From contig NC_091995.1 of assembly GCF_044704955.1 (NCBI RefSeq), positions 44,950,001 to 45,014,000 of the forward strand: DNA of 64,000 bases. The letters run 5' to 3'. The notes beneath the pieces are model-generated. The model saw only the letters and a program-made list of their open reading frames with translations, was not told the origin of the DNA and did not search any database. Below, one piece after another: positions 5,480 to 49,400 of this stretch. A program made the position numbers and the translations under genes. The stretch is from Pristiophorus japonicus. Lineage: Eukaryota. The first letter of the stretch is position 1; each line of letters opens with the position of its first letter.

Positions 5480-5484
5480 AACAT

Positions 5485-5845
5485 GCTGGTATTTGTTGGT
5501 CGCTGCGGGCCTCTGTTGGTATCGGCTGGTCTTTGTTTGTTGGTATCTGCTGGTTTCTGCCGGTCTCTGTTAGTCTCTACAGGTTTCTGCCAGTCTCTGC
5601 TTGCCTCTGCTGGGCTTTGACGGTTTCTGCCAGTCTCTGCTGGTCTATGTTAGTTTCTGTTAGTCTCTGCTGGTCTTTTATGGTCCCTGTAGTCTCTGCT
5701 AGTTTCTGCTGGTCTCTGTTAGTCTCTGCTGGTCTTTGATGATCTCTGTTGGTATCTGCCAGTCTCTGCTGGTTTCTGCCAGTCTCTGCTGGTTTCTGCC
5801 AGTCTCTGCTGGTCTCTGACGGTCTCTGCTTGTTACTGCTGGTCT
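5485..5845. repeat. Degenerate ~10-bp-unit tandem repeat (CTGCTGGTCT/CTGCCAGTCT) abutting the TM exon
   Basis: Visible tandem structure; the minus-strand frame reads roughly (QQRLAETNRD)n. Confidence 0.9.
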
Positions 5846-5848
5846 TGC

Positions 5849-5962
5849 CATTGTGCCTCTTGCTCCAGAGGCCAATTCCAGCGATGATAGCAAGAAGACT
5901 GAGTGAGATGGCTGCTGCTGCAATCATAATCCTGACCTTCAAGCCTCCTTGTGATGCTCTCT
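5849..5962 (-). CDS. MHC class I-like heavy chain, exon 5 (connecting peptide, transmembrane helix, basic stop-transfer)
   Basis: Acceptor gtctgcag|AG is phase 1 and in frame with alpha3, giving ERASQGGLKVR-IMIAAAAISLSLLAIIAGIGLW-SKRHNG. The 3' end is uncertain: a GC donor after 5849, a GT donor after 5837, or read-through to the stop at 5577. Confidence 0.75.
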
Positions 5963-6114
5963 CTGCAGACATGTACAGTGTACTTTAAAATAATATTGAT
6001 CAATAACAATTTCCGTATGATTTCATTATGTACTTCATTAAGTTGCGAACTAGCTCTGTACCTGCTTGATTGTAAAGAAATTCTTCGATTATGTCGAGTC
6101 TTTCAGAAACTCAG

Positions 6115-6320
6115 TTTAGTTTTGGATTGACACAGGGCAATGGGGAGAGAGCAGGGCAGTGTGATTAGTTTAGGATTGATACAGGGCTATGGAGAGAGTG
6201 GGCAGTGAGACTAGTTTTGGATTGACACAGGGCAATGGGGAGAGAGCGAGGCATTGGGATTAGTTTGGCATTACTCTAGCAAGGAGCATGGACACAACGG
6301 GCCAAATGGCCTCCTGTGTA
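6115..6320 (+). repeat. Tandemly reiterated CR1 3'-end segment (~50 bp, 3 copies)
   Basis: ggattgacacagggcaatggggagagagc...gattagttt is repeated and followed by the CR1 3' motif gggccaaatggcctcct. Confidence 0.65.
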
Positions 6321-6574
6321 GTAACCCTCTCTGCGCCGCCATTCTAACATGCCCTGTTGTACATTCTCTATTTAAGAACAGGACTGGCTCTCCAGTTCAA
6401 ACACTCCCACTCAGCACCGGCCCCGGGTTAAACCTGGGACTCTCTGGTCTGCATGTCTTAATTCTACATTGGGCAGTCCATTTACTAATTGTGTTATATG
6501 GGCAATTGAAGGGGTTTATCCTCAGTGTAACACAGTGAAATATTTACAAGGGAGGTGGAAATATGCTTTTGAAA

Positions 6575-6858
6575 GAAAGAAAAAAGAAAGATTTGCATTT
6601 ATATAGCAACTTTTATAACCTCAGGATGTCCCAAAGCACTTTACAGCCAATGAAGTACTTTTGAAGTGCAGTCACTCTTGCAATGTAGGAAATGCAACAG
6701 TTAATTGTGCGCACAGCAAGCTCCCACAAACAGCAATGTAATAATGACCAGATAATCTGTTTTAGTGATGTTGGTTGGGGGATAAATATTGGCCCCAGGA
6801 TACCAGGGAGAGCTCCCCTGCTCTTCTTCAAAGAGTGCTGTGGCTCTTTTACATCCAT
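6575..6858 (-). mobile_element. Deu-domain SINE 3' part
   Basis: gcatttatatagc...gcacagcaagctcccacaaacagcaatg matches the other copies. Confidence 0.85.
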
Positions 6859-7349
6859 TTGTTCATCTCACCGAATTGTTCCAATCCTCACCTCCCAAGA
6901 GTTCCTGGCCACGTTAATCAGTTGTCTAACCATCAGTGAGTGATTCTGGCTTGGAGTGAGCTCCGTGGGGCCTCTTTGGGTCGAGGTAGCTCCAAGATGA
7001 CAACCTAGTGGTGGAAGCTGGTTAGCCAGTGGTAGACTCGGTAACCTGATAACTCAACCAGGGAGTCCATCGCACTCCAGGCCCTGATGGCCATCGACCA
7101 GCCAGCCTGGTGACTGATCGAAGAGTAGATCTGACACAGAGGGTGGACATTTTTCCCAATTAGACCAAGGCCCTAACTGGTGAGACTGCCCTGGTTGGCC
7201 AAGCAACAGGAAGTTTACCAGTGCTCAGTACTGCTAGACTGTGTGGCTTTAGCTGGTTAAACTCCACCAGTGCTCCTGCACAGAACTGGGGCTCCCTAAG
7301 CCTTTGCTCTGTCAACCACATTTCTGGTCTTCATATTATAAAAATTATA

Positions 7350-7848
7350 GGTGCAAAAAAAAGGTTTACTAGAATGATACCAGAACTGAGAGATTATACC
7401 AATCAGGTGAGGTTTAACAGGCTGAGGCTTTTGACTTTAGAAAAGAGAAGGCAGAGGGGTGATCTGATAGAGGTCTTCAAAATGTTAAAGGGTTTTGTTA
7501 GGGTAGACATAGAGAAGATGTTTCCACTTCTGGGGGAGTCCAAAACTAGAGGCCATGAATAAATATAGTCACTAATAAATCCATTAAGGAATTCAGGAGA
7601 AACTTCTTTATCCAGAGAGTGGTTAGAATGTGGAACTCACTACCACATGGAGTGGTTGAGGCGAATAGTACAGATGCATTTAAGGGGAAGCTGGATAAGT
7701 ACATGAGGGAGAAAGGAATAGAAGGCTATGTTGATAGGGTGAGATACAGTAGAGTGGGAGGAGGCTCGTGTGGAGCATAAACACCGGCATGGACCAGTTG
7801 GGCCGAATGGCCCGTTTCTGTGCTGTACATTCTCTGTAATTCTATGTA
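7350..7848 (+). mobile_element. CR1 3' fragment
   Basis: RFTRMIPELR...LEKRRQRGDLIEVFK plus 3' tail. Confidence 0.88.
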
Positions 7849-8359
7849 ACCAGCACCAAATCTCTCTGGACGTGGGTAAGTGGCAGCTGTCCTTACAGGG
7901 AGAGAGCGCAGACTCCACAGTAGGCAAACAGAAACTCGAACTGGCTTTCTCAGTTTGGAGATGAGGCAGGGTGTCCACATGTGTCAGTCACCTGATTGGC
8001 CAAATATGATCTGAAGGCACTGGCTCCCTGTTGTGAGGTGATTCCAAGGTGCTGCCCACCCTCCAGTGTTTTATCCAAGTGGCCTAATCTGCGAATGTTG
8101 GCAGGTCATTGATAGGAGGGCAGGTCATCACCACCAGCACTTTCAGCAAGTGTCTGATTTCTGCATAATGGTTAGAAGCCAGAACCCTGTACAAGTGTCC
8201 CATCTAATCCAGGCCACACAACGAAGGAAGGTAGGAATATAGGAATCATTGGACATCAAGACCATCGAGTTCGCCTTCTACAATTCCAGTAGTCACATGT
8301 GACAGAGTTGTTGACAAACCAGAGAAATAAATCTCTTATCAATTAGTCCACAAGGCAGA

Positions 8360-8825
8360 GGTCAGAAGCTCGTGGGTTCAAGTCCACTCCAGAAACTTAA
8401 GGACAAAAAGTTAGGCTGACACTTCAGAGCAGTACTGAGGGAGCGCTGCATTGTGAGAGGGGCAGTACTGTGAGAATGCTGCACTGTTGGAGGGGCAGTA
8501 CTGAGGGAGTGCTGCACTATCGGGGGTCAGTACTGAGGGAGTGCTGCACTGTTGGAGGGGAGGTACTGAGGGAGTGCTGCACTGTGGGAGGGGCAGTACT
8601 GAGGGAGTGCTGCACTGTTGGAGGGGCAGTACTGGTGGAGTGCTGCACTGTCAGAAGATCAGTACTGAAGGAGTGCTGCATTGTCAGAGGGGCAGTACTG
8701 AGGGAGTGCTGCACTGTCGGAGGGAAAGTACTGAGGGAGTGCTGCGTTGTCGGAGGGGCAGTACTGAGGGTGTGCTGCACTGTCGGAGGGACAGTACTGA
8801 GAGAGTGCTGCACTGTCGGAGGGTC
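8360..8825 (+). repeat. SINE head with internal 33-bp minisatellite (GGGAGTGCTGCACTGTCGGAGGGGCAGTACTGA)n
   Basis: About 12 copies; source of the spurious (RECCTVGGAVL)n ORFs. Confidence 0.9.
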
Positions 8826-9145
8826 CCCTCAGCATCCTCTGCTCCAAGGAGTATCACAAGCACTGATCCTTGCGGTCCCCAACTAGTTACAGTCTGCCAA
8901 CCAGAAAAAGTTCCGTTTATTCCAACTCTCTGTTTTCTGTCCATTCACCAATCCTCAATCCACGCGATTATATTACCCCCAATCCCATGAGTCCTAATTT
9001 TGTGTAATAACCACGTGTGGCACCTTTTCGAATGATTTTTGAAAATCCAAATACACCACATCCACTGGTTCCCCCTTATCCATCCTACCAGTTACATCTT
9101 CAAAAAATTCTAACAGATTTGTCAAACACAATTTCCCATTCATTA

Positions 9146-10265
9146 AAGGGACTGCGTTTTTTCTGTCCTTCTGCGCATGTATCTGTCGAGACTCCGCCCC
9201 CGATGTCTCCCGCCCGGACCGGAAGTGCGGCCCCGAACCTGAATCATTCCGACCACGGTGTTACTGATCCTCCGCGAGCCTGCCGACGGACCTGGGCCCC
9301 CGAGTCCCCCGCTGAGCCTCCTGCTCCTCCCACAGTGCCGAGCCTCCGAGCAGCCGCCAGCGCTGAGCGGCCCCGACCCCCGAGCGGCCCCGACCCCTGA
9401 GCAGACCCGACCCGAGCGGCCCCGACCCCCGAGCGGCCCCGACTCGAGCGGCCCCGACCCGATCGGCCCCGGCACGAGCGGCCCCGACCCCCGAGCGGCC
9501 CCGACCCCCGAGCGGCCCCGACTCGAGCGGCCCCGACACCCGAGCGGCCCCTACCCCTGAGCGGCCCCGACCCGAGTGGCCCCGACCCCTGAGCAACCCC
9601 GACCCCCGAGCGGCCCCGACACCTGAGCGGCCCCGACCCGAGCGACCCCGGCACGAGCGGCCCCGACACCCGAGCGGCCCCTACCCCTGAGCGGCCCCGA
9701 CCCGAGTGGCCCCGACCCCTGAGCAACCCCGACCCGAGCGGCCCCGACACCTGAGCGGCCCCGACCCGAGCGACCCCGACCCGAGCGTCCCCGACCCCCG
9801 AGCGGCCCCGACCCGAGTGGCCCCGAGCGCTGAGCAGCCCCGGCCCGAGCGGGCGGCCGAGAGCGGGGGGGCAGGGAAGAGAGAGCCTAGAAATGGGGGC
9901 GGGGGTGGGAGGGAAGAGAAAGAGTCTGGGGTGGGAGGAAGGGAGAGAGCGAGAGATAGCATCTGGGAGGGGAGTGGGGCGGGTGAGAGAGAGCCTGGGA
10001 TGGGAGGGAGGGAGAGAGCGTCTGGGGGGAGGGGGGAGACAGAGTCGGTGGGGGGGAAGGGAGGGAGAGAGTCTGGGGGCAGGGGGAGAGAGAGCTTGAG
10101 GTGGGAGGAAGAGAGAGCTTGAGGTGGGAGGGATGGAGAGAGAGAGAGTCTGGAGGGGAGGGGGAGAGAGAGAGTCTGGAGGGGAGGGGGAGAGAGAGAG
10201 ACTGGGGGGAGGGAGAGAGAGAGAGAGACTGGGGGGAGGGGGAGAGAGAGTCTGGCGGGGGTGCG
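9146..10265. mobile_element. GC-rich composite element inserted in a CR1: CTGCGCATG head, (CCCGAGCGGCCCCGAC)n array, GA-rich array
   Basis: Flanked by minus-strand CR1 pieces; same architecture as 23500-24910. Confidence 0.6.
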
Positions 10266-10329
10266 GGGGTTACGTTTGCTATGTTCCAATCCTTGGGGAC
10301 TGTTCTCGGGAATTCTGGAAGATCAATAA

Positions 10330-11240
10330 TGAGTTGGACAAAGAGGCCGAGATACAAAGATGGGTGGGAAAGAAAATTGTGAGGAGGACACAAATAATCT
10401 GCAAAGGGATATAGACAGGCTAAGTGAGTGGGAAAAAATTTGGCAGATGGAGTATAATGTGGGAAAATGTAAGGTGGCAAAAAAAATAGAAAAGCAAATT
10501 ATAATTTAAATGGAGAAAAATTGCAAAGTGCTGCAGTCCAGAGGTTAGCAATGGTTAGTATGCAGGTACAGCAAGTGATCAGAAAGGCAAATGGAAAGTT
10601 GGCCTTTATTGCAAGAGGGATAGAGTATAAAAGCAGAGAAGTCCTACTACAACTGTACAGGGTATTGGTGAGGCCATACCTAGAGCACGGCATGCAGTTT
10701 TGGTCTCCGTATTTAAGGAAGGATATACTTTCATTGGAGGTTGTTCAGAGAAGGTTCACTAGGTTGATTCTGGAGATGAGGGGCTTGACATGTGGATAGG
10801 TTGAGTAGATTGGGCCGATACACATTCGAGTTCAGAAGAATGAGAGGTGATCTTATCGAAACATATAAGATAATGAGAGGGCTCACAAGGTGGATGCAGA
10901 GAGGATAATTCCACTCACAGGGGAAACTAAAACGAGGGGACATAGTCTCAGAATAAGTGGCCGCCCATTTAAAACTGAGATGAGGAGGAATTTCTTCTCT
11001 CAGACGGTTGTAAATCTGTGGAATTCTCTGCCCCAGAGAGCTGGGGAGGCTGCGTCATCAAATATATTTAAGACGGAGATAGACAGATTTTTGGGCGATA
11101 GGAATAAAGGGTTATGTGGAGCGGGCAGGAAAGTGGAGCTGAGTCCATGATCAGATCAGCCATGATCTTATTAAATGGCGGAGCGGCCTCGAGGTGTCAG
11201 ATGGCCTACTCCTGCTCCTATTTCTTATGTTTTTATGTTT
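10330..11240 (+). mobile_element. CR1 3' fragment
   Basis: RT C-terminal ORFs 10521..10799 and 10890..11150, followed by the 3' tail. Confidence 0.9.
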
Positions 11241-11249
11241 CTTTCCTTT

Positions 11250-14195
11250 TTCATATTAAGGTCACTCTTCCCTGAGGTCTCCTTTACTTCAATGTTATTA
11301 ATGAAACCTTTCTCATTGGACAATACTAGATCTGTTCCCTACTTGGCTCCTCAACATACTGATCTAGAAAACTATTTTGTTTACATTCCATGAGCTCGAC
11401 CTCCACATTATTACTGCAAATTTGGTTTGTCCAGTCTGCATGTAGATTAAAGTCCCCCATGCTTACTGTATTACCCTTGTTATATGCACCTCTAATTCCC
11501 TGATTAATACTGTGCCCTACATTACCACTACTGTTTGGGGGCCTATGAACAACTCCCACCCAATGTTTCCTCATGTTTCTTAGCTCCACCCAAACTGATT
11601 CTACTTCTTGGCTAGGATAGATTGGCGAATGATACTTAAGGGGTTGACTGTGGATGGGCAATGGCATATATTTAGACACCACATGGATGAACTACAACAA
11701 TTGTACATTCCTGTCTGGCGTAAAAATAAAAAAGGGAAGGTGGCTCAACCGTGGCTATCAAGGGAAATCAGGAATAGTATTAAAGCCAAGGAAGTGGCAT
11801 ACAAATTAACCAGAAATAGCAGCGAACCCGGGGACTGGGAGAAATTTAGAACTCAGCAGAGGAGGACAAAGGGTTTGATTAGGGCAGGGAAAATGGAGTA
11901 CGAGAAGAAGCTTGCAGGGAACATTAAGACGGATTGCAAAAGTTTCGATAGATATGTAAAGAGAAAAAGGTTAGTAAAGACAAACGTAGGTCCCCTGCAG
12001 TCAGAATCAGGGGAAGTCATAACAGGGAACAAAGAAATGGCGGACCAATTGAACAAGTACTTTGGTTCGGTATTCACTAAAGAGGACACAAACAACCTTC
12101 CGGATATAAAAAGGGTCGGAGGGTCTAGTAAGGAGGAGGAACTGAGGGAAATCCTTATTAATCGGGAAATTGTGTTGGGGAAATTGATGGGATTGAAGGC
12201 CGATAAATCCCCAGGGCCTGATGGACTGCATCCCAGAGTACTTAAGGAGTGGCCTTGGAAATAGTGGATGCAATGACAGTCATTTTCCAACATTCCATTG
12301 ACTCTGGATCAGTTCCTATGGAGTGGAGGGTAGCCAATGTAACCCCACTTTTTAAAAAAGGAGGGAGAGAGATAACAGGGAATTATAGACCGGTCAGCCT
12401 GACATCGGTAGTGGGTAAAATGATGGAATCAATTATTAAGGATGTCATAGCAGTGCATTTGGAAAGAGGTGACATGATAGGTCCAAGTCAGCATGGATTT
12501 GTGAAAGAGAAATCATGCTTGACAAATCTTCTGGAATTTTTTGAGGATGTTTCCAGTAGAGTGGACAAGGGAGAACCAGTTGATGTGGTATATTTGGACT
12601 TTCAGAAGGCTTTCGACAAGGTCCCACACAAGAGATTAATGTGCAAAGTTAAAGCACATGGGATTGGGGGTAGTATGCTGACATGGATTGAGAACTGGTT
12701 GTCAGACAGAAAGCAAAGAGTAGGAGTAAATGGTTACTTTTCAGAATGGCAGGCAGTGACTAGTGGGGTACCGCAAGGTTCTGTGCTGCGGCCCCAGCTG
12801 TTTACACTGTACATTAATGATTTAGACGAGGGGATTAAATGTAGTATCTCCAAATTTGCGGATGACACTAAGTTGGGTGGCAGTGTGAGCTGCGAGGAGG
12901 ATGCTATAAGGCTGCAGAGCGACTTGGATAGGTTAGGTGAGTGGGCAAATGCATGGCAGATGAAGTATAATGTGGATAAATGTGAGGTTATCCACTTCGG
13001 TGGTAAAAACAGAGAGACAAACTATTATCTGAATGGTGACAGATTAGGAAAAGGGGAGGTGCAAAGAGACCTGGGTGTCATGGTACATCAGTCATTGAAG
13101 GTTGGCATGCAGGTACAGCAGGCGGTTAAGAAAGCAAATGGCATGTTGGCCTTCATAGCGAGGAGATTTGAGTATAGGAGCAGGGAGGTGTTGCTACAGT
13201 TGTACAGGGTCTTGGTGAGGCCACACCTGGAGTATTGTGTACAGTTTTGGTCTCCTAACCTGAGGAAGGACATTCTTGCTATTGAGGGAGTGCAGCGAAG
13301 GTTCACCAGACTGATTCCCGGGATGGCGGGACTGACCTATCAAGAAAGACTGGATCAACTGGGCTTGCATTCACTGGAGTTCAGAAGAATGAGAGGGGAC
13401 CTATTAGAAACGTTTAAAATTCTGACGGGGTTAGACAGGTTAGATGCAGGAAGAATGTTCCCAATGTTGGGGAAGTCCAGAACCAGGGGACACAGTCTAA
13501 GGATAAGGGGGAAGCCATTTAGGACCGAGATGAGGAGGAATTTCTTCACCCAGAGAGTGGTGAACCTGTGGAATTCTCTACCACAGAAAGTTGTTGAGGC
13601 CAATTCACTAAATATATTCAAAAAGGAGTTTGATGAAGTCCTTACTACTAGGGGGATCAAGGGGTATGGCGAGAAAGCAGAAATGGGGTACTGAAGTTGC
13701 ATGTTCAGCCATGAACTCATTGAATGGCGGTGCAGGCTTTAAGGGCCGAATGGCCTACTCCTGCACCTATTTTCTATGTTTCTATGATTTTCCCAGCTAA
13801 GATCCTTTCTCTCGGTTGTCTTTATACTATCCTTTATTATCAGTGCTACCCCCTCCTCCTTTTCCATTTTGCCTATCTCTTTGAAAAGTTAAGTATCCTG
13901 GAATATTTAGTTCCCAACCTTGGTCACTTTGCAACCACGTCTCCGTAATGGCTATTAGATGAAACCTATTAATTTCTACCTCCGCTAATAATTCATCTAT
14001 TTTGTTGCGAATGCTTCGGGCATTCAGATATAGTGCCTTTAGCTTTTTTTTCTATTTTTCCCTGAAGCCACCTTAGTCACTGATGCCCTATTACCTTTGC
14101 TACTCTCTCTGTCCCTTCCTCACTCACTCTGCTTATTTTTACCCAAAACTCTGCTCTGCTCTAGACCCTTGATATTTCCCTTGCTGCTTTTAAAT
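11250..14195 (-). mobile_element. Older CR1 endonuclease region, split by a younger CR1 at 11608-13786
   Basis: EVESVWVELRN...RPPNS...MGDFN at 11326-11605 continues upstream at 13787 onward (GGVALI, ITET motifs on the minus strand). Confidence 0.75.
11608..13786 (+). mobile_element. Young 5'-truncated CR1; open 481-aa RT frame after one frameshift near 12250
   Basis: ORFs 11608..12264 and 12249..13694 ([29 protein letters not shown]); tail ttctatgtttctatg. Confidence 0.96.
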
Positions 14196-14199
14196 TTAC

Positions 14200-14865
14200 A
14201 TTGGATTACATGGGATATACAACACAGAAACAGGCCATTCGGCCCAACCACTCCATGCCGGCATTTATGCTCCACTTGAGCCTCCTCCCGTCTTTCCTCA
14301 CCTTAATCTATCAGCGTAACCCTCTATTCCCTTCTCCCTCAAATGCTTGTCTAATCTCCCCTTAAATACAACTGTACTATTCGCTTCAACCACTCCCTGT
14401 GGTAGTGAGTTCCACATTCTCACCTCGCTTTGGGTAAATACTTTTCTTCTGAATTCTCTATTGGATTTCTTGCTGACTATCTTATATTGATCGTATCTAG
14501 TTATGGTCTTCCCCACAAGTGGAAATATTCTCTCTGTCTACTCTATCAAAACCTTTCATAATTTTAAAGACCTCTATTGGATCACCCCTCAGCCGCCTTT
14601 TTTCAAGCGAAAACGGACCCAGCCTGTTCATCCTTTCCTGAAATGTATACCCTCGCATTTCTGGTATCATCCTTGTAAATCTTCTCTGCACCCTCTCCAG
14701 TGCCTCTATATCCTTTTTATAATATGGTGACCAGAACTGTGTGAAGTACTCCCAGTGTGGTCTAACCAAGGTTCGATACAGGTTTAGCACTACTCCCCTA
14801 CTTTACAATTCTATCCCTCTAGAAATAAACCCTCGTGCCTGATTTGCTTTTTTCTATGGCCTTTT
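14200..14865 (-). mobile_element. CR1 3' fragment
   Basis: LYRTLVRPHWEY...RRLRGDPIEVFK. Confidence 0.88.
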
Positions 14866-14960
14866 ACTCTTTCCTGAATCCCCCCACCACCCCGCTCCTT
14901 CATTAGTTCAAAACCGTGTCTCCTGCCCTAGTAACACAGCCCCCTCCAGCTGCCACTTAC

Positions 14961-15233
14961 CCCAGGGGACATCGAGCCCCTGAAGGAGGCTGGCGTGCTC
15001 GATGTGACAGGAGTATCTCTCCCCGTCGTCTCCACTTAGCTCAATGGTTTTCATCACCCGATACGTCTCCTCCTGGTTGGGCAGCAGGTCGCTGGTTTCA
15101 ACGTCGGGCACCTCCTGACCATTCCTCAGCCACGTCACATCGATAGGCCGTGGGTAAAAGCCCGTCACAAGGCAGGAGAGCCTCAGCACTTGCTCCCTGT
15201 TGCTCCTCTCCCCAATGAACACCTCAGGGGTGG
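14961..15233 (-). CDS. MHC class I-like heavy chain, exon 4 (alpha3 Ig C1 domain)
   Basis: 273-nt exon, acceptor ctctctcag|CC, donor G|gtaagt. Translation ATPEVFI...LSCLVTGFYPRPIDVTWLRNG...LLPNQEETY...YSCHIEHASL...VPW is a classic C1-set domain. Confidence 0.96.
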
Positions 15234-15374
15234 CTGAGAGAGTTAAACAAAGACTAAAATCAGTGACGGGTTCGGGTCAAAGGTCAGCGACCTGCAAGGT
15301 TACCTCTGTTTCCCTCTCCGCAGATGCTGCTGAGTATTTCCAGCCTTTTCTCTTTTTAGTTCCGCATCCATGGA

Positions 15375-16290
15375 AAGATTGGAGATACTGGGTCTGTTTT
15401 CTTTGGAGCAGAGGAGGCTGAGGGGAGACCTGATTGAGGTGTATAAACATATGAGGGGCCTGGATAGAGTGGCAGAGGGGTAAACAACCAGGGGGCATAG
15501 AATAAAAGTAATTGGGGGAAGGTTTAGAGGGAATTTGAGGGGAAATTTCTTCACCCAGAGGGTGGTTGGGGTCTGGAACTCACTGCCTGAAAGGGCGGTC
15601 AAGGCAGAAACCCTCACCACATTTAAAAGATACATGGGTGTGCACTTGAAATGCCGTAACCTACAAGGCTGCGGACCAAGAGCTGGGAAATGGGATTCGG
15701 CTGGATAGCTGTTGGTCGGCCGACGCGGACACGATGGGCTGAAATGGCCTCCTTCCGTGCTATAAATTTCTATGATTCTGTGGTATTTTGTGTTTGTATT
15801 AGTGAGAAGTTCACTATTTGTTCCTTTTTTTCCCCCACCCACCCACCATCAACTTTCTTCGCTGGAGGCAGGTGACTGATGCTGAGATACAGCACGAGGA
15901 AAGAGAACAAGAGAAGGCTGAGGGGTGAGGTCCTTAACATTATGAAGGGTTTTGATAGAGTCGATGCAGAGAGAATGTTCCCAATTGTGGGGAAGACCAG
16001 AACTAGGGGCCATCAATATAAGATAGTCACTAATAAATACAATAGGGAATTCAGGAGAACCTCTTTACCCAGAGAGTGGTGAGAATGTGGAACCCGCTAC
16101 CAGAGGGAGTAGTTGAGGCAAATAACACAAATACTTTTAGAGGGACGCTGGCTAAGCAGGTGAGGGAGAAAAGAATGAAGGATATGCTGAACTGGGGTGG
16201 GAGGAGGCTCGAGTGGAGCATAATCGCCAGCATCGACCAGTTGAGCCGAATGACCTCTTCCTATGCTGTACATTCGATGTAATTCTATGT
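15375..16290 (+). mobile_element. Two CR1 3' fragments (~15375-15780 and ~15910-16290)
   Basis: FFTQRVV-type C-termini and CR1 3' tails. Confidence 0.8.
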
Positions 16291-16444
16291 AAAGCCACAC
16301 TCTTGTACCACACACAAGTACCCAGTGTTCACGAGTGGGCCTACACAGTGAGGAAGCTATTCAACTAAGGGGGTATTACAGCTTAGTCTAATCCTATCCT
16401 CACCCGATGTCAACATGCATGCACTTTCCAGCCAAGGTGGCTGA

Positions 16445-16830
16445 AAGGAAGAAAGACTTGCATTTGTATAGCGCCTCTAATGACCACCAGATGTCTCTAA
16501 GCACTTTACAGCCAATGAAGTACTTTTGGAGTGTAGTCACTATTGTAATATGGGAAACGCGGCAGCCAGTTTGCACGCAGCAAGCTCCCAGAAACAACAA
16601 TGTGATAATGACCCAGATAATCTGTTTAATGATGTTGATTGAGTGATAAATATTGGCCCCAGGACACCACGGGTGACTCCTCTGTTCTTCTTCGAAATAG
16701 TGCCATGGGATCTTTTACATCCACCTGAGAGGGCAGACAGGGCCTCGGTTTAATGTCTCATCTGAAAGACGGCACCTCTGACAGTGCAGCCATTCCCTCA
16801 GCACTGCACTGGAGTGTCGGCGTAGATTTT
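16445..16830 (-). mobile_element. Deu-domain SINE
   Basis: Core and tail match the other copies. Confidence 0.85.
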
Positions 16831-17057
16831 ACTTACTTATCGGGTAAATAATCGGATTCAGGTCACCTGCCTGAATTCCTGCACCACCCCCGCCCCCCCA
16901 CCCGCTGCCTCGAAGCAAGTTGCAGTGCCACTTTACTGCTACCCTGTCCAAGAACAGCTGGCTCGGGATAGACCCGGAAATAAAAACCCGGTCTGTATCA
17001 CACTCCCCACCTGAGCTGTCGGGAGCACTCCCTCTAGTCGCCGGTCCCACAACGTAC

Positions 17058-17333
17058 CTCTCCTCTGCAGTGCTCCTCGCCCACACTCGACGTATGTCAG
17101 CAGCCATTTCACGCAGTCCTTCTCCAACAGAGCCTTGAAGTACTTGTTCATGAAGGAGTTGGCATTCCAGCGCTCTGCTAATGCCCGGAACTCTGGATTC
17201 AGCGCCATCCAACTCGTTGTGTCCTTGTCAAAAACATACGCATCCTCCCCACCATATCCCAACTTTATAAACCCGTCTGTGGAATTATCATCCATCACCT
17301 CACAGCCACACATTCCCTGGACAAAGAAAACAC
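17058..17333 (-). CDS. MHC class I-like heavy chain, exon 3 (alpha2 domain)
   Basis: 276-nt exon, acceptor ttttccccccag|GT, donor G|gtacgt. Translation VFFVQGMCGCEV...GYGGED...FDK..SW...ERW...LEKDCVKWLLTYVECGRGALQRR contains the conserved C101-C164 pair. Confidence 0.95.
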
Positions 17334-17607
17334 CTGGGGGGAAAATTAATACTCAAATCAATTTACAGTGTGAAAAAAGATTCAATCGGGTAGATCCAAC
17401 AACTTGCATTTATATAGCACCTTTAACATCATAATCCCAGGGCGCCTCACAGGAATGTTATCAAACAAGATCTGACACTGAGCCATATAAGGAGTTACTA
17501 GGGCAGATGACCAAAAGCATGGATGATGGGGTAGGTTTTCAGGAGCGTCTTAAAGGAGGAGAGAGAGGTGGAGAGGTTTAGGGAGAACCAATATCATCTG
17601 GTGGGGG

Positions 17608-19394
17608 TAGGGGTGGATTAACCATGGGGCGGATGGGGCTACAGCCCCATGCCCACCAAAGAACATAGGCCCACCAAATTGAGAGAAATTTGCATATATG
17701 TATAGGAATCTAGCACAGTATTGCAATGTTACCAGAACCAGAATATATACCTACTAAGGGGGATGCAGTATAAAAGCAGAGAAGTCCTACTGCAGCTGTA
17801 CAGCGTATTGGTGAGGCCACACCTGGAGTACTGTGTGCAGTTTTGCTCTCCATATTTAAGGAAGGATATACTTGCATTGGAGGCTGTTCAGAGAAGGTTC
17901 ACGAGGTTGATTCCAGAAATAAGGGGTTGACTTATAAGATCGGTTGAGTAGATTGGGCCTATACTCATTGGAATTAAGAAGAATGAGAGGTGATCTTATC
18001 GAAACATATAAAATAATGAGGGGGCTCACAAGGTGGATGCAGAGAGGATGTTTCCACTCATAGGGGAAACTAAAACTAGGGGGGCATAGTCTCAGAGTAA
18101 GGGGCCACCCATTTAAAACTGAGATGGGGAGAAATTTCTTCTCTCAGAGAGTTGTAAATCTACGGATACAGACTATAAGAGCACAAGAAATAAGAACAGG
18201 AGTAGGCCATTTGGCCCCTCGAGCCTGCTCTGCCATTCAATAAGATCATGGCTGATCTGATCATGGACTCAGCTCCACTTCCCCGCCTGTTCCCAATAAC
18301 CCTTTACTCCCTTATTGCTCAAAACTCTGTCTATCTCTGCCTTAAATATATTCCGTGACGCAGCCTCCACAGCTCTCTGGGGCATAGAATTCCATAGATT
18401 TACAACCCTCTGAGAGAAGAAATTCCTCCCCATCTCAGTTTTAAATGGGCGGCCCCTTACTCTGAGACTATGCCCCCTTAGTTTTAGTTTCCCCTATGAG
18501 TGGAAACATTCTTTCTGCATCCACCTTGTGAGCCCCCTCATTATTTTATATGTTTCGATAAGATCACCTCTCATTCCAATGAGTATAGACCCAATCTACT
18601 CAACCGATCTTATAAGTCAACCTCTCATTTCTGGAATCAACCTCGTGAACCTTCTCTGAACAGCCTCCAATGCAAGTATATCCTTCCTTAAATACGGAGA
18701 CCAAAACTGCACACAGTACTCCAGGTGTGGCCTCACCAATACCCTGTACAGCTGTAGTAGGACTTCTCTGCTTTTATACTCCATCCCCCTTGCAATAAAG
18801 ACCAACATTCCATTTGCCTTCCTGATCACCTGCTCTACCTTCATACTAACTTTATGTGTTTCATGTACAAGAACACTCAGGCCTCTCTGTATTGCAGCAC
18901 TTTGCAATTTTTTTCCATTTAAATTATAATTTGCTTTTCTATTATTTCTGCCAAAGTGGATAACCTCACATTTTCCCACATTACACTCCATTTGACAAAT
19001 CTTTGCCTATTCACTTAGCCTGTCTATATCCCGTTTGCAGATTTTTTGTGTCCTCCTCACAATTTGCTTTGTCACCCACCTTTGTATCATCAGCTAACTT
19101 GGCTACATTATACTCGGTCCCTTCATCTAAGTCATTAATATAGATTGTAAATAGTTGAGGACCCAGGACTGATCCCTGCAGCACCCCACTAGTTACTTTT
19201 GCCAACTGGAAAATGACCCATTTATCCTGATTCTCTGTTTTCTGTTAGTTAGTCAATCCTCTATCCATGCGAATATTTTTTCCCCCCAACCCTGTGAATC
19301 ATATACACGTAATGTAATGATCATGAACAAACATAACTATAGGCCCATTTGGATCAGTTTGCCCCAGGCCGATCGGGCCCTTAATCCAGCCCTG
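17608..19394. mobile_element. Non-autonomous hAT element with 8-bp TSD, carrying nested CR1 fragments
   Basis: Ends TAGGGGTGGATTAA and TTAATCCAGCCCTG resemble the TIRs of the hAT at 2536-5479. Flanks GGTGGGGG (17600-17607) and GGTGGGGA (19395-19402) match at 7 of 8 positions. Confidence 0.8.
17755..19290. mobile_element. Inverted CR1 pair: plus-strand copy ~17755-18165, minus-strand copy ~18175-19290
   Basis: Both encode [11 protein letters not shown]...RFTRLIPE and share unusual variants such as cttataagatcggttgagtagattgg. Confidence 0.88.
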
Positions 19395-19989
19395 GGTGGG
19401 GAAATCAAGAACAGTTTGGCATTATCTTAAAGTTACAGCTACGTCATCTAGAAGTCAGATCAGGAAGCACTTCTTCACACAAAGGGTGCTAGAAATCTGG
19501 AAATCTCTCCCCCAAAAGCCTGTGGATGCTGGAGGTCAATTGGAGCTTATAAAACTGAGATAGATCGATTTGTGTTCGGTAAGGGTAGTGAGGGGTAGGG
19601 AGCAAAGGTGAGGAAATGGATTGAGGTACAGATCAGCCGTGATCTAGTTGAGTGGTGGAGCAAACTCGAGGGGCTGAATGGGCTCCTCCGGTTCCTGTGT
19701 TGTGAAGCAGTTGTGTCACATTGAGGTTCTATTCATGTTCCGCTCTGCTCAACTTTAACCTTAGCAGTAGGTTAGATGCCAGGAGGTACACCTTTTCACA
19801 GAGTCATCGATCTCGGGAACATGTTGCCAGGACCTGCAGTGAGTGTGGGAATAGGCTGCAAGTGTTGCAAAGGGAGCTGGCCGATATAGAAGGTGGCTGG
19901 GGTTAACAGGCACCAGTGATGTCAGCCACAGGTGTCTCCTGCACCTTCCTCGATTCCCTGCGGGGGACAGAGCGGAATTTCCCAGAGAT

Positions 19990-20540
19990 TTTGCTTCCTT
20001 ACCGAAGAAAGGATATATTTGCCATAGAGGGAGTGCAGCGAAGGTTCACCAGACTGATTCCTGGGATGGTAGGACTGTCGTATGAGGAGAGATTGGGTCG
20101 ACTCGGCCTGTATTCACTAGAGTTTAGAAGAATGAGAGGGGATCTCATTGAAACGTATAAAATTCTGACTTGGTTGGATAGACTGGATGCAGGGAGAATG
20201 TTTCCCCTGGCTGGGAAGTCTAGAACAAAGGGTCACAGTCTCAGGATACGGGGTAGGAAATTTAGGACTGAGATGAGGAGAAATGTTTTCACTCAGAGGG
20301 TGGTGAACCTGTGGAATTCGCTACCACAGAAGGCTGTGGAGGCCAAGTCAGTGAATATATTTAAGAGGGAGATAGATAGATTTCTAGAAACAAAAGGCAT
20401 CAAGGGGCATGGGGAGAAAGCAGGAATAAGGTGTTGAGATAGAAGATCAGCCATGATCATATTGAATGGCGGTGCAGACTCGAAGGGTCGAATGGCCTAC
20501 TTCTGCTCCTATTTTCAATGTTTCTGTGTTTCTATGTTTC
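19990..20540 (+). mobile_element. CR1 3' fragment
   Basis: C-terminal part of ORF 19916..20437; tail gtttctatgtttc. Confidence 0.9.
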
Positions 20541-20654
20541 CTAATTGGCCGACAGTTCTTTCCTCTTTTTACTTTGTCTCTCCCAGGAGATTGTACGATT
20601 ATGGGAGGGAGAAGAAGCTGATGGGTTCACCGTGCCAAGACGGTGTTTCTGTCT

Positions 20655-21410
20655 GACAGTACTGAGGGAGCGCTGCACTGTGGGAGGGGCAGTACTGAGG
20701 GAGTGCTGCACTGTCAGAGGGGCAGTACTGAGGGAGTGCTGCACTGTTGGAGGGGCAGTACTGAGAGAGCACTGCACTCTTGGACAGGCTGTGCTGAGGG
20801 AGTGCTACACTGTCGGAGGGGCAGTACTGAGGGAGTGCTACACTGTCAGAGGGGCAGTACTGAGAGAGCACTGCACTGTGCGGGGGGCCGAACTGAGGGA
20901 GCTCCGCTGCACTGTCGAAGGTGCAGTACTGAGGGAGTGCTGCACTGTTGGAGGGGCAGTACTGAGGGAGCTCTGCACTTTCAAACAGGCAGTACTGAGG
21001 GAGCGCTGCACTATTGCAGGGTCAGTACTGAGGGATTCCTGCACTGTCGGAGCAGCAGTACTGATGGAGTGCTGCACTGTCAGAGGGGCAGTACTGAGAG
21101 AGTACTGCACTGTGGGAGGGGCAGAACTGAGGGAGCTCCGCTGCACTTTCGAAGGAGCAGTACTGAGGGCGTGCTGCACTGTCGGAGGGGCAGTACTGAG
21201 GGAGTGCTGCACTGTCGGAGGGGCAGAACTGAGGGAGCTCCACTGCACTGTCGAAGGGGCAGTACTGAGGGAGTGCCGCACTGTCGGAGGGGCAGTACTG
21301 AGGGAGCGCTGCACTCTCGGACAGGCAGTACTGAGGAAGTGCTGGAGTGTCGAAGATGCCATCTTTTAGATGAAACATTAATTCGAGGCCCCGTCTGTCT
21401 GTTGAGTTGA
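20655..21410 (+). repeat. 33-bp SINE-derived minisatellite (~21 copies) running into the SINE core
   Basis: Same unit as the array at 8430; ends in gatgccatcttttagatgaaacatta. Confidence 0.92.
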
Positions 21411-21689
21411 AAATAAATAAAACTTACCAAGGATTGTTCCTAGTTTCATTACACAGTTCAATGCACACCAACAAAAGCAGATGAACAAATCATTCATCTC
21501 ATTGCTATTTGCTGTGCACCAAATGCCTGCCTTGCTGCTCCCAGAAAGGGACAATCGGCAGCTAATTCCAAGTCAGTTATTGGGTGTGAGGTGGTGCGGG
21601 CCGTTTCTGAGAGACACGTAAGGCTCCGTATCGATACAAATCCCTTCCTACTGTCACAGGGTCGCTGCACCGTCTGTCAGGTCACTTAC

Positions 21690-21950
21690 TCGAGGCACCC
21701 TGGCGCTGGCGGTAAAATATCTCGGCGTTTCCTTTGACCAGGCCGTGGAAGCCCGCCATTGTGATAGCCATGGCGTCCCAGTGATCCCTCTGGAAGGAGT
21801 TGGCCATCCACCGCTGTCTGGGCACAGTCCGCTGCAACGTGCTGTCGAAATACGCGATCTGATAGTCATCCAGCATCGCCACAAAACTGTACTCGGGCAG
21901 CTCGGCCCGGCCATGGTTCAGGAGGTAGTAAAATGCCAGGATGTGATAAT
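21690..21950 (-). CDS. MHC class I-like heavy chain, exon 2 (alpha1 domain)
   Basis: 261-nt exon, acceptor ctagcag|AT, donor A|gtaagt. Translation DYHILAFYYLLNHGRAELPEYSFVAMLDDYQIAYFDSTLQRTVPRQRWM...HWD has the class I alpha1 hallmarks H3, LPE, LDD..I.YFDS, VPR..WM and W60. Confidence 0.93.
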
Positions 21951-22044
21951 CTGCTAGATCACAAACAGAAACCAGTCTCAAAAATGCCGCAGATTGTAAA
22001 GTAACTCAAAGTGGAATTAGCAGTGGTTGATGCTAAAACTGATT

Positions 22045-22592
22045 CGAACATAAGAATTAGGAGCAGGAGTAGGTCATACGGCCCTCGAGCCTGCTCCGCC
22101 ATTCAATAAGATCATGGCTGATCTTCTACCTCAACTCAACTGTCCCTCCCACGTCCCTTGATTCTCCGAGTGCCCAAGAATCTATCGATCTCTGTCTTGA
22201 ATATACTCATCGACTGGCCATCCACAGCCCTCTAGGGTAGAGAATTACAAAGATCACAGTTAGAACATTGTGTCCAATGTTGGACACTGTTTGTTCAGAG
22301 GAATGTCAAGGTCATGGAGAAGGTGCGGAAGAGATTTTCTCGGGTGATCCCCGGGTGTGAGCGGGTTGTGTTATGAGGACAGACTGGGATTATTTTCACT
22401 GGAACAGAGAAGGTCGAGGGGAGCTAATAGAGGGCTCCAAACTCTCAGGGTTTGATCAAGTCGAGAATCAACACTTCTCACTGTTTGGTGAGTCAGTAAC
22501 CGGAGGGCATAAATTTATCATCATCACCACAGGAGCAAAGGGGGTGATTTGGAGCAGTTATTTATAATGGAGAGGGATGTTGGGATATGGAA
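22045..22592. repeat. Local duplicate, copy 1 (two fused LINE fragments) in intron 1
   Basis: Near-identical to 28128-28655, including the internal junction gaattacaaagatcacagtt. Confidence 0.9.
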
Positions 22593-22815
22593 CCCCTTCC
22601 TAACCTTTTCTTTCCCTTTTCCCTCTCCCCTTACCCTCCCGCTTATCCCTTTCCCCTTTCCCCTTCCCTTTCCCCATTTCCTTCCCCATTCCCCTTCCCT
22701 TCCCTACCCTTTCCCTGTCCCATTTCCAAGCCTTCATTTCCCTTCCCTTTCCCATTCCTCTCCCTTTCCCTTTCCCTTCCTTCCCCTCCCCTTCCCTGTC
22801 CCTTCACTTCCCTTC
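22592..22815. repeat. Polypyrimidine/polypurine tract (TTTCCCC-like)n
   Basis: About 220 bp almost entirely C/T on the plus strand. Confidence 0.9.
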
Positions 22816-23116
22816 TGAGGTAGAGCTCTAATACTTCACACCCAAATGCCTATTCTTTGTGTGCGCGCCTTGACAATAATTGTCAGTCCATAAGAGAACT
22901 GCTCTGATCAAAGACTTTACAAACATATCTGTAACACAACTTCTGACAGTGACCCCTCCCCTGAACAGGGATTATCCTGACCCTGAATCGCTCACACACA
23001 CCCAAGGCAATGAAATACTCCATGCCCAGGGATCGCTCAGCACTATCTTGTGATACTCTCAGTCTCGGGGTCCCCTCAAATACTGCCCACAGATAGAAAC
23101 TGTTTGAATTGCTTAC

Positions 23117-23168
23117 CAGAGGAGACTGTGGGCACACAGTAAACATTCAGTAAAGTAACAAGCAGCAT
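23117..23168 (-). CDS. MHC class I-like heavy chain, exon 1 (signal peptide MLLVTLLNVYCVPTVSS)
   Basis: Minus strand reads agaacATG CTG CTT GTT ACT TTA CTG AAT GTT TAC TGT GTG CCC ACA GTC TCC TCT G|gtaagc. This is a 17-aa hydrophobic leader ending VSS with a strong phase-1 donor, in frame with alpha1 (G|AT = Asp). It is too short for the ORF track. Confidence 0.8.
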
Positions 23169-23219
23169 GTTCTAAAGGCATCCGAGACACTGATTAACCA
23201 GGAGAGAAGCTGCTGTAAC

Positions 23220-47889: not shown

Positions 47890-49005
47890 GAAGATTGAGG
47901 GTTGTTTGTTTCAGATGATTTAAGGAGTTGATAGGGTAGATAGAGATAAACTATTTCCTCTGGTGGGGGAGTCTCGGACAAGAGGGCATTACCACAAATA
48001 TAGAGCTCGGCCATTAAGGTGTGAAGTCAGGAAGCACTTCTTCACCCAAAGGGTAGTAGAAATCTGGAACTCTCTCCCTCAAAAAGCTGTTGAGGCTGAG
48101 GGTAAATAGAAAATGTCAAAACTGAGATTGACAGATTTGTGTTAGGCAATGTTATTAAAGGTTACAGAACCAAGGGTTAAGGTGCAGATCAGCCATGATC
48201 TAATTAAATGGGGCGGAACAGTCTTGAGGGGCTGAATGGCTTACTCTTGTTCGTATGTTCAATTCAACCAATAAGGAAGGATATTGATGGCAAGGGAATA
48301 GGGTTATAGAACGGGAGTCTAAAAGATGGTTAAACATAAAGTGAGAGGAAATCCTTTTAAACATTAGTTAAACTGCCTGTACAACAATGCACACAGTATC
48401 CGTAATAAAACAGGGGAGCTGGAGACCATCATGCATTGCGAGGAACCAGATATAATCGAGATTACTGAGACATGGCTATGGCAAAATCAGAACTGGGAAT
48501 TAAACATTGCACGGTATAACATGTTTAGAAACAATAAAGAAGGGAAAAGGGGAGGTGGAGTTAGCTGTACCTATTAGTGATAAAATAATGGCTGTAGAAA
48601 AAAGTGATGCAGCTAGCAGCAAGACAAAAATAGAATCCATATTGAAAGAGATGAAAGATAATAAAGGATCAATCACATCAATAGGTGTAGTCTACAGACT
48701 ACCTGATAGTGGAAGGCAGATAGAGGAAGAAATATGCAGAAAAATTGGGGAAATGAGTAAAAAACATAGAATAATAATCATGGGGGATTTCAACTACCCC
48801 AATATTAATTGGACAGAAGAGGTAGGTAAAGGGGATAAGGGAATGGAGTTCCTACAATGTGTACAGGAGTCCTTTCTAACCCAGTATTTAAAACGCCAAA
48901 CAAGGGAGGATTTGCTATTGGATCTCGTAATGGGGAATGAACCAGAGCAGATAAGAGAAGTAAAAGTAGGGGAACTTCTCGGCAACAGTGACCATAATAT
49001 ATTGG
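47890..49005 (+). mobile_element. CR1 3' fragment followed by a CR1 endonuclease fragment
   Basis: YRLP, IIMGDFNYP, LLDLVMGNE, LGNSDH in ORFs 48507 and 48988. Confidence 0.85.
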
Positions 49006-49006
49006 A

Positions 49007-49400
49007 CGCGACTACTGCCAGCGACATTAAATCGTTGCACAAGCGCAGTTCCAATGGTCTCTTGGTTGTTCTTGCCGGACTTCGTAGTCAGCAATCATTT
49101 TGATAGGATGGAAATTGTGTTCGTTTTGCTGGTCACTAGAATAATTCACAGTCCTGCTTCTCAAATGTGGCCTCAGTCCCCAAAGGTTCAGGAAAGGACA
49201 GTTCATAAAATTCTAATGCGTGTAAAATGCTAATGACCATGATTCGATTCGATGTAAATATTAGGACACGAAGACGTTGCAGGTTTAACGGCGAAGTTGA
49301 GCATGCACCCTGTCGAGATGATACGAAAGATCTTTACAGGAAAGGCTGTGAACATTATCCTGCTAGTTGTGTGTTTATAAATCAAATTGCTAATGGAAAA
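49007..49400 (+). mobile_element. Possible degenerate piggyBac transposase fragment
   Basis: ATTASDIKSL..GLLVVLAGLRS and MIRFDVNIRTRRR..HAPCRD resemble the piggyBac motifs TT.EI..GLL.LAG..RS and LRFD..TR..R..APIR. Confidence 0.4.

Follow-up and report, generated by a model that had tools for sequence, protein, structure and literature searches.

Which class I lineage can an MHC gene belong to when most of its peptide-terminus anchors are missing, and what might its groove hold? The question was raised by a locus of the Japanese sawshark, Pristiophorus japonicus, at which a first-pass annotation had described a class I gene with a hydrophobic, non-peptide-like groove. Among living animals with an MHC-based immune system, sharks and rays are the oldest. 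In the 64,000-nt window (the whole stretch of DNA analyzed), this class I gene is nonclassical, intact and already annotated.

Gene structure and repeats

The gene lies on the minus strand and consists of five exons (leader, alpha1, alpha2, alpha3, and TM plus tail), all of which have canonical AG acceptor/GT donor borders; all introns are phase 1. The exons and the main repeats are as follows:

23117..23168, minus strand: exon 1, start codon and signal peptide (MLLVTLLNVYCVPTVSS plus 1 nt); 52 nt; donor GTAAGC
21690..21953, minus strand: exon 2, alpha1 domain; 264 nt, phase 1 in and out; Pfam MHC_I, 1.9e-4
17334..21689, no strand: intron 2, 4.4 kb, retroelement fragments
20657-21352: 33-bp minisatellite, intron 2
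17058..17333, minus strand: exon 3, alpha2 domain; 276 nt; Pfam MHC_I, 3.6e-17
14961..15233, minus strand: exon 4, alpha3 immunoglobulin C1-set domain; 273 nt; Pfam C1-set, 1.2e-19
5963..14960, no strand: intron 4, 9.0 kb, filled with repeats
12249-13694, plus strand: LINE reverse-transcriptase ORF inside intron 4; RVT_1, 1e-31
8429-8823: 33-bp minisatellite, intron 4
5577..5962, minus strand: exon 5, connecting peptide, transmembrane helix and entire cytoplasmic tail; TAG stop at 5579-5577
5484..5845, no strand: tandem repeat with a 10/20-bp period, encoding most of the cytoplasmic tail and running beyond the stop codon

Exons were searched singly, and a 416-aa P. japonicus protein, P0164, automatically named "MR1-like", stood in for the whole-protein steps. 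P0164 is 100% identical, end to end, to all five exon translations (residues 1-17, 19-105, 107-197, 199-288 and 290-416 for exons 1 to 5), and the exon lengths together with four split codons (A18, S106, A198 and E289) total exactly 416. Because of this identity, the gene model is not new. The splice sites, the Pfam matches and the identity to P0164 bore out the earlier description of five exons, joined by phase-1 GT-AG introns into an open leader-alpha1-alpha2-alpha3-TM protein. The exon sizes given there (52, 276 and 273 nt) were correct except for alpha1, whose 261 nt counted whole codons only and should read 264. In 11 orthologues the exons are joined at the same residues as in the sawshark gene. 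An alternative donor within the TM exon (GCA/GTAACA) was rejected because orthologue tails align in frame past it. No second class I gene was detected when the exons were searched against the window with tblastn.

The gene was also said to be spread through repeats, and its introns are indeed full of LINE, minisatellite and high-depth repeat sequences. Other long ORFs in the window were LINE endonuclease/reverse-transcriptase fragments or had no Pfam match. Four unrelated sequencing runs, examined over positions 17180-23179, covered the intron repeats alone, at very high depth, and gave 0 depth in the leader, alpha1 and alpha2 bins; these runs contain 5-8% of the sampled words and have no bearing on expression. 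The tail repeat is present in 30.6 copies at period 10 and 18.5 copies at period 20, and its units are QQRLAETxRD-like; the tail matches itself. Orthologue tails align via the same exon and carry one or two copies of the motif. The sawshark tail is a sawshark-specific tandem-repeat expansion of a motif shared among orthologues.

Lineage placement and closest relatives

The predicted product has the features of the MHC class I superfamily, to which sequence and model together assign it: an alpha1/alpha2 platform, a C1-set alpha3 domain, a transmembrane anchor, and cysteines at the positions of both disulphide pairs (C101-C164 and the alpha3 pair). In an AlphaFold2 model (pLDDT ~95 over alpha1/alpha2), each platform is built of eight strands and two helices, and an Ig domain and a TM helix are also present. 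The model's top structural matches were class I chains throughout (Z 24.7-27.8), the best being the shark UGA structure, PDB 9ch4, followed by chicken YF1*7.1, a lipid/lipopeptide binder (Z ~26). These Z-scores do not discriminate, because the values for many class I families differ by no more than 1-3 units.

In each of 12 elasmobranchs (sharks and rays) we found a single orthologue, and these proteins are separated from the next class I proteins by an E-value gap of 1e-104 to 1e-52. Clustering inside classical UAA had been named as one outcome that would refute the earlier proposal; in our tree the orthologues form a clade of their own (support 100/99), apart from classical class I, and the classical-type sawshark protein P0180 groups elsewhere. 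This lineage and UGA lie on one side of a branch with support of 96/87. The lineage is a paralogue sister to UGA, neither UGA nor UFA, and the split is older than the divergence of sharks and rays. The first-pass annotation had left open whether the gene came from a known nonclassical lineage or a new one: the nonclassical placement held, as a separate clade sister to UGA.

UGA is both the closest lineage to P0164 and, as PDB 9ch4 ('Crystal structure of shark nonclassical MHC CLASS I, UGA'), its closest solved structure (phmmer 5.1e-72, Foldseek 1.1e-29, VIA Z 27.8). The alpha1 exon also had its best solved match in 9ch4 (2.4e-23); in the alpha1 search, the long teleost proteins that outscored UGA were fused tandem gene models, and giant bacterial proteins in that list were spurious repeat matches (28% identity over 54 residues). 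Both lineages have G97, A123, L159 and, in sharks, Q84, and they have in common the alpha1 motifs NHG, VPRQxWMA and AGFHG and the alpha2 motif MNxYFKxLLEKDC. However, identity between 9ch4 and the lineage gene is 40-41%, whereas P0004, which together with P0002 represents UGA in the sawshark, matches 9ch4 at 1e-138. Domain by domain, the window gene shares no more than 38-49% identity with these sawshark UGA proteins. In addition, UGA has Y7, Y59, N86, K146, F99 and F143, in contrast to F7, H59, no N86, R146, C99 and L143 in the lineage. With ~40% identity to 9ch4 and a position in the sister clade, the gene falls outside UGA.

The first-pass annotation had mentioned UFA as a lineage described as CD1-like, but the window gene is not UFA. 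The UFA structure, PDB 8gm8, matches the basking shark protein P0028 at 4.3e-90, and P0072, automatically named 'CD1d-like', is the stingray orthologue; both sit on another branch, which is very divergent. UFA and the window gene resemble each other in the first half of alpha1 (LPE.S, MLDD.QI.Y.DS, PRQ.WMA), but 8gm8 hit the window alpha1 only at 3e-11 and was not among the top listed whole-protein solved matches. UFA also differs in its separate long branch, its very divergent alpha2, and the lack of a cytoplasmic tail, its proteins terminating in a short hydrophobic stretch. In little skate the lineage gene and UGA are on one 127-kb contig with consecutive accession numbers, and in Hypanus sabinus UFA and the lineage gene are reported on contigs of equal size; it is equal contig size that suggests linkage of the lineage gene with UGA or UFA. 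UFA and UGA have both been described as CD1-like (PMC10751288, PMC12562908), and a 2025 review states, via personal communication, that both bind lipids (PMC12562908).

Comparisons with CD1, MR1 and teleost molecules were based on scores against solved structures. After UGA, MR1 was the best-scoring named family (73.7 bits, E 1e-19, for the alpha2 exon; ~176-181 bits for whole P0164 against plain human MR1 chains), and a D-H-W motif at the Y59 position is common to both. The edge over a carp classical molecule was small (~178 vs 173 bits). MR1 captures its ligand through a Schiff base on Lys43, together with R9, R94 and an aromatic cradle of Y7, Y62, W69 and W156. In contrast, P0164 shows K43->T, R94->G, I96->C, W69->F and W156->L on the alignment, with Y152 kept, and manual alignment added R9->Y and Y7->F. 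MR1 orthology was thus ruled out, as Lys43 and other ligand-binding residues are missing; because the ligand-capturing residues of MR1 are absent, the database name 'MR1-like' is misleading.

The predicted mode of action resembles that of CD1: the heavy chain would be monomorphic, and its groove deep, apolar and devoid of the peptide-terminus anchors. However, among the listed solved-structure matches, CD1 chains hit alpha3 only, never alpha1/alpha2. CD1b, CD1c and CD1d use a YxxPhi endosomal sorting motif in the tail. No such motif was found in the window tail, which has no Tyr at all, or in the orthologue tails.

Classical UAA (PDB 6lup; sawshark P0180) shares the five-exon layout, the fold, both disulphides and the C1-set alpha3. 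Identity to P0180 is nevertheless 31-41% per domain, and a classical peptide presenter was rejected since the anchors are mostly lost, the N86 glycan is absent and the gene is placed outside the classical clade.

Other described class I lineages were also considered. UDA has been described as retaining 8 of 9 anchors, UEA as multicopy and restricted to sharks, UCA as restricted to squaliform sharks, and UBA as derived from UAA and multicopy. With two anchors, a single gene per species and members in both sharks and rays, the lineage studied here would match none of these four descriptions. No publication naming it was found in the literature searched, including searches on 9CH4, 8GM8 and UFA/UGA, and the supplement of PMC10751288 carries no UFA or UGA gene labels.

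Groove composition and predicted ligand

Anchor positions were re-derived on a 145-sequence alignment, in the HLA-A2-style numbering used in the first-pass annotation. The changes are Y7->F, Y59->H, Y84->Q, Y99->C, Y123->A, T143->L, K146->R and Y159->L, with N86 absent; W147, W167, Y171 and the C101-C164 pair are kept. All anchor losses proposed earlier were therefore real, and they are lineage-wide: the pattern F7 H59 Q84 C99 A123 L143 R146 L159, without N86, is fixed throughout. Only two of eight peptide-terminus anchors (W147 and Y171, of Y7, Y59, Y/R84, T143, K146, W147, Y159 and Y171) are retained, whereas the complete YYRN...TKWY..Y pattern is seen in the classical-type sequences of this alignment. 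As stated earlier, the only sequon is N-S-T, located in the first alpha2 loop; it is encoded, together with the C101-C164 pair and an extra groove-floor Cys (CGC), by exon 3.

The hydrophobic strings reported earlier (LAFYYLL, FVAML, AMAITMAGFHGLV and FFVQGM) were all present in the translation. When 43 groove positions were compared across 69 class I sequences, the 12 lineage members were the 12 most hydrophobic, with mean Kyte-Doolittle values of 1.27-1.63, compared to 0.30-0.85 for UGA and -0.1 to 0.44 for classical molecules. These 43 positions include 26-30 apolar and 3-4 charged residues in the lineage. Between sawshark and rays or other sharks, identity is 72-78% over alpha1/alpha2 and lower, 59-71%, over alpha3. 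In classical class I the order is the opposite, and the pattern seen here fits a fixed ligand. The groove residues were not significantly more invariant than the remaining alpha1/alpha2 (27/43 vs 64/136, Fisher p = 0.08). From the anchor losses, the top-12 groove hydrophobicity and the absence of MR1 ligand residues, we infer that presentation of a lipid or other hydrophobic ligand is the best reading of the groove. The lipid- or small-ligand presenter proposed earlier is thus supported by the nonclassical clade, the apolar groove and UGA as a relative, and the class of ligand stays at the level of a prediction.

Other explanations have to be weighed against this one. The molecule might present lipopeptides or very hydrophobic short peptides, with the acyl or side chain buried and the C-terminus held by R146, W147 and Y171, as in chicken YF1*7.1 or in macaque class I binders of N-myristoylated peptides. 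These three residues, including the conservative R146 in place of K146, are kept across the lineage, and YF1*7.1 entries with N-myristoylated or N-palmitoylated ligands were the second-best structural matches (Z 25.7-26.0). However, these Z-scores are tied with those of many classical molecules, the other two C-terminus contacts, Y84 and T143, have become Q and L, and of the four N-terminus contacts only one remains, with Y7, Y59 and Y159 lost; we consider this mode unlikely. It is also rather improbable that the protein presents no antigen and is a class I-shaped ligand or receptor, like ZAG, HFE, FcRn or stress ligands, with a groove that is collapsed, self-filled or occupied by a housekeeping lipid. 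Strong conservation of the whole alpha1/alpha2 surface would fit a fixed protein partner too, and ZAG entries were among the structural matches (Z 24.7-25.0). On the other hand, the groove-floor residues G97, C99 and A123 are small, so the cavity would be enlarged rather than filled; the transmembrane anchor and C1-set alpha3 are intact; and the sister molecule UGA has been crystallized and is a reported lipid carrier (PMC12562908).

A silent or decaying sawshark copy, whose reading frame is open by chance and whose repeat-encoded tail marks degeneration, would be consistent with the passage of the tail through a 10-bp microsatellite and with the presence elsewhere of a second, truncated sawshark copy (P0174). 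Such decay is hardly credible, as all five exons are open with canonical splice sites, the proximal tail aligns with orthologue tails, and alpha1/alpha2 have kept both an identity of 72-85% to distant orthologues and each lineage-specific groove residue.

We therefore return to hydrophobic-ligand presentation, which is the probable function: a class I molecule sister to UGA, CD1-like but probably not a CD1 orthologue. The sawshark product would pair with beta2-microglobulin via its normal alpha3 domain, and its deep, nearly all-apolar alpha1/alpha2 groove would hold a conserved hydrophobic ligand, either a lipid or a greasy small molecule. This ligand would be displayed to lymphocyte receptors, perhaps those of T cells, in a manner functionally resembling CD1.

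Implications for early jawed vertebrates

A more far-reaching interpretation, which we offer tentatively, is that these genes form a third, unnamed 'CD1-like' elasmobranch lineage: a UGA paralogue from before the shark/ray split, with one gene per species, the most apolar groove of the chondrichthyan molecules compared and a lineage-wide free Cys99, that could restrict its own semi-invariant lymphocytes. Recent structures of UFA and UGA have made the relative age of lipid and peptide presentation a testable question. UGA has an equally old sister lineage, single per species and with a groove that is still more hydrophobic. If lipid binding is also true, early jawed vertebrates would have had several specialized non-peptide presenters, not one; and if the third-lineage interpretation is true, a division of labor among lipid presenters would already have existed in the earliest jawed vertebrates.

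Exon structure, annotated protein and repeat content

The class I gene was found to consist of five minus-strand exons, all of which were open and bordered by canonical AG acceptors and GT donors, with every intron in phase 1. The leader-alpha1-alpha2-alpha3-TM arrangement with phase-1 GT-AG splicing proposed in the first-pass annotation was thus confirmed at all five exons. Its lengths of 52, 276 and 273 nt also held, but the alpha1 exon measured 264 nt and not 261 nt, a figure that counts whole codons alone.

Exons of the class I gene and LINE-type open reading frames (ORFs) in the window
23168-23117, minus strand: exon 1, leader, 52 nt, begins at ATG
21953-21690, minus strand: exon 2, alpha1, 264 nt, weak Pfam MHC_I match (1.9e-4)
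17333-17058, minus strand: exon 3, alpha2, 276 nt, Pfam MHC_I (3.6e-17)
15233-14961, minus strand: exon 4, alpha3, 273 nt, Pfam C1-set (1.2e-19)
5962 to stop codon 5579-5577, minus strand: exon 5, connecting peptide, TM helix and tail, open reading
12249-13694, plus strand: LINE-type reverse-transcriptase ORF
31646-32350, plus strand: LINE-type reverse-transcriptase/endonuclease ORF
33819-35378, minus strand: LINE-type reverse-transcriptase/endonuclease ORF
48507-49103, plus strand: LINE-type reverse-transcriptase/endonuclease ORF

Exons were searched singly, and the alpha1 query of protein representatives led through the little-skate protein P0001 to P0164, a Pristiophorus japonicus protein of 416 aa with the automatic name "MR1-like", as the referenced whole protein. 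P0164 was 100% identical to each exon translation over its full length, and the split codons predicted at the four junctions (A18, S106, A198 and E289) correspond to residues present in it. The proposed gene model therefore coincides exactly with an existing annotation, including the repeat-encoded tail. Neither the sequence nor the kind of gene (UFA, UGA, CD1-like) is new. Read from these exons, the gene is of the nonclassical class I type and intact. Comparison of the exon translations with the window revealed no second class I gene within the 64 kb. The alpha1 search also returned giant bacterial metagenome proteins (P0013, P0019, P0052 and P0073, 3300-5200 aa, E about 1e-15 to 1e-5). One of them, P0013, named 'gliding motility-associated-like', was treated as spurious, its match being 28% identity over 54 residues in one of many repeats, with the score summed over repeats. 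A second sawshark copy outside the window, P0174 (244 aa), was 93-98% identical but lacked the first half of alpha2; immediately beyond alpha3 it runs into a brief stretch of unrelated sequence and ends. A truncated duplication, decay to a pseudogene or an alternative haplotype may account for this copy.

The spread of the gene over 17.6 kb of repeats, as first described, was borne out by its introns, which contain the reverse-transcriptase ORF at 12249-13694, two 33-bp minisatellites and further repeats. Arrays of the 33-bp unit CAGTACTGAGGGAGTGCTGCACTGTCGGAGGGG were observed in two different introns, at 8429-8823 (12 copies) and 20657-21352 (21 copies). Unrelated sequencing runs carry this minisatellite at very high depth, and it is therefore a genome-wide repeat; in a search for RNA support, the runs retrieved shared few sampled words with the window and their assembled contigs overlapped the intron repeats alone. 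Outside the exons, the bulk of the window consists of LINE-type ORFs and simple repeats. A further cellular gene was not recognised anywhere in the 64 kb; the remaining long ORFs are LINE fragments or have no Pfam match.

In exon 5, the connecting peptide and TM helix are followed by a 92-residue tail, whose coding region crosses a tandem repeat (5484-5845, period 10/20 bp) that extends past the stop codon. Orthologue tails are 15-45 residues long and contain, in the same exon, one or two copies of a motif roughly QQxxAETSRDxQ. This shared motif rules out an artefact of reading into junk: the sawshark tail, about three times the length of any orthologue's, derives from an ancestral coding motif through a repeat expansion confined to this species, and the tandem repeat has kept the coding frame open. 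Inspection of the sawshark tail found no tyrosine-based sorting motif.

Relationship to other class I lineages

In a homologue search, close relatives of the gene were present as one per species in twelve elasmobranchs (Leucoraja, Pristis, Mobula, Hypanus, Heptranchias, Scyliorhinus, Stegostoma, Hemiscyllium, Chiloscyllium, Mustelus, Cetorhinus and Pristiophorus), followed by an E-value gap from 1e-104 to 1e-52 at the next class I proteins. The first-pass annotation had named clustering inside classical UAA among the outcomes that would speak against its reading. In alpha1/alpha2 trees the gene fell outside the classical type, in a clade of this lineage alone (support 100/99) with the batoids as one subclade inside, and the sawshark classical-type protein P0180 was placed elsewhere, among teleost U-type sequences. 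The nearest neighbour clade, joined with the lineage at 96/87, comprised P0004 and P0002 from sawshark and P0007, P0147 and P0150 from skates. It was identified as UGA because P0004 matches PDB 9ch4, titled "Crystal structure of shark nonclassical MHC CLASS I, UGA", at 1e-138. PDB 8gm8, titled UFA, is orthologous to a third, long-branched lineage (P0028, P0072).

Identity of the gene with either described molecule was rejected, as it belongs to a sister clade of UGA, and UFA forms a separate long branch. The sawshark's own UGA proteins differ considerably from it (38-49% identity per domain), and its place in the tree makes the gene a UGA paralogue. Since both lineages are present in sharks and rays, their split predates the shark-ray divergence. 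UBA, UCA, UDA and UEA, as described, are presumably a poor fit to a lineage present once per species in sharks and rays alike and with only two anchors. No name for the lineage was found in the literature searched, where it appears undescribed.

The best-scoring named family was MR1, both for the alpha2 exon (73.7 bits, E 1e-19) and for the whole protein (about 176-181 bits against plain human MR1). However, a carp classical molecule reached 173 bits against the whole protein, and the ligand-capturing residues of MR1 are replaced (K43→T, R94→G, I96→C, W69→F and W156→L). Given their absence and the small score lead, "MR1-like" is a misnomer. In the alpha2 exon (17059-17331, minus strand), human MR1 alpha2 scored above the sister lineage UGA (73.7 versus 61 bits) although MR1 functional residues are not kept, which may reflect slow evolution in both or old common ancestry. 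CD1 chains, among the matches listed, matched the gene in the alpha3 domain only.

In little skate, a single 127-kb contig carries both the lineage gene and a UGA gene, whose accessions are consecutive. In Hypanus sabinus, the lineage gene and UFA are reported on contigs of equal size, and in four sharks the lineage gene is reported on a contig equal in size to that of many other class I genes. The UFA-lineage proteins P0028 (Cetorhinus) and P0072 (Hemitrygon) lack a cytoplasmic tail and terminate in a short hydrophobic segment resembling a GPI-anchor signal; stingray UFA copies carry the NCBI name 'CD1d-like'.

Groove composition, predicted structure and proposed function

Anchors were read from a 145-sequence alignment (HLA-A2 numbering). 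The gene has F7, H59, Q84, no N86, C99, C101, A123, L143, R146, W147, L159, C164, W167 and Y171, whereas classical-type sequences have Y-Y-R-N-Y-C-F-T-K-W-Y-C-W-Y at the matching positions. All anchor substitutions reported earlier were recovered, and Y99→C was added. The pattern is essentially fixed in the twelve species. Stegostoma departs from it by W167→Q and the three orectolobiforms by W147→L; the N86 equivalent varies yet is never Asn. Throughout the lineage, the first alpha2 loop keeps the sole glycan sequon, D-N-S/T-T. The free Cys that replaces classical Tyr99 on the groove floor (codon 17308-17310, minus strand; first Cys of MCGCEV; P0164 residue 114) is kept as a CGC motif in 12/12 orthologues, and UGA carries Phe there.

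Groove composition was scored at 43 positions lining the HLA-A2 groove, which we mapped via landmark residues (38-43 scored per sequence). In the lineage, 26-30 of the residues at these positions are apolar and only 3-4 carry a charge, and its mean Kyte-Doolittle values (1.27-1.63) occupy ranks 1-12 among 69 class I sequences, compared with 0.30-0.85 in UGA and about -0.1 to 0.44 in classical class I. The hydrophobic groove first noted from sequence alone is thus the most hydrophobic of this set, and the small floor residues G97, C99 and A123 should make the cavity deeper. Identity between sawshark and rays or other sharks was 72-78% in alpha1/alpha2 and 59-71% in alpha3. Better conservation of alpha1/alpha2 than of alpha3 is the reverse of classical class I and typical of fixed-ligand molecules. 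Invariance of groove positions was somewhat above that of the remaining alpha1/alpha2, a difference that was not significant (p = 0.08). Judged by these residues, the groove is peptide-incompatible, exceptionally hydrophobic and deeply conserved.

From a 70-sequence alignment, AlphaFold2 predicted the class I fold with high confidence (pLDDT near 95 across alpha1/alpha2) and placed a TM helix at 296-324. The top structural match was 9ch4 (Foldseek 1.1e-29, VIA Z 27.8, 41% identity), followed by chicken YF1*7.1 (Z 26) and by MR1, classical molecules of birds and fish, and ZAG (Z 24.7-25.8), predicted-model scores that are too tightly spaced to tell ligand type apart.

The hydrophobic groove and the sister position of UGA support the lipid or small-ligand reading of the first-pass annotation as far as sequence allows. 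If expressed, the gene would encode a heavy chain that pairs with beta2-microglobulin and whose groove would display a lipid or other hydrophobic ligand. Such beta2-microglobulin-associated display is, with moderate confidence, the most likely mechanism for this gene, and lipid binding has been reported for its sister UGA (PMC12562908, there credited to personal communication).
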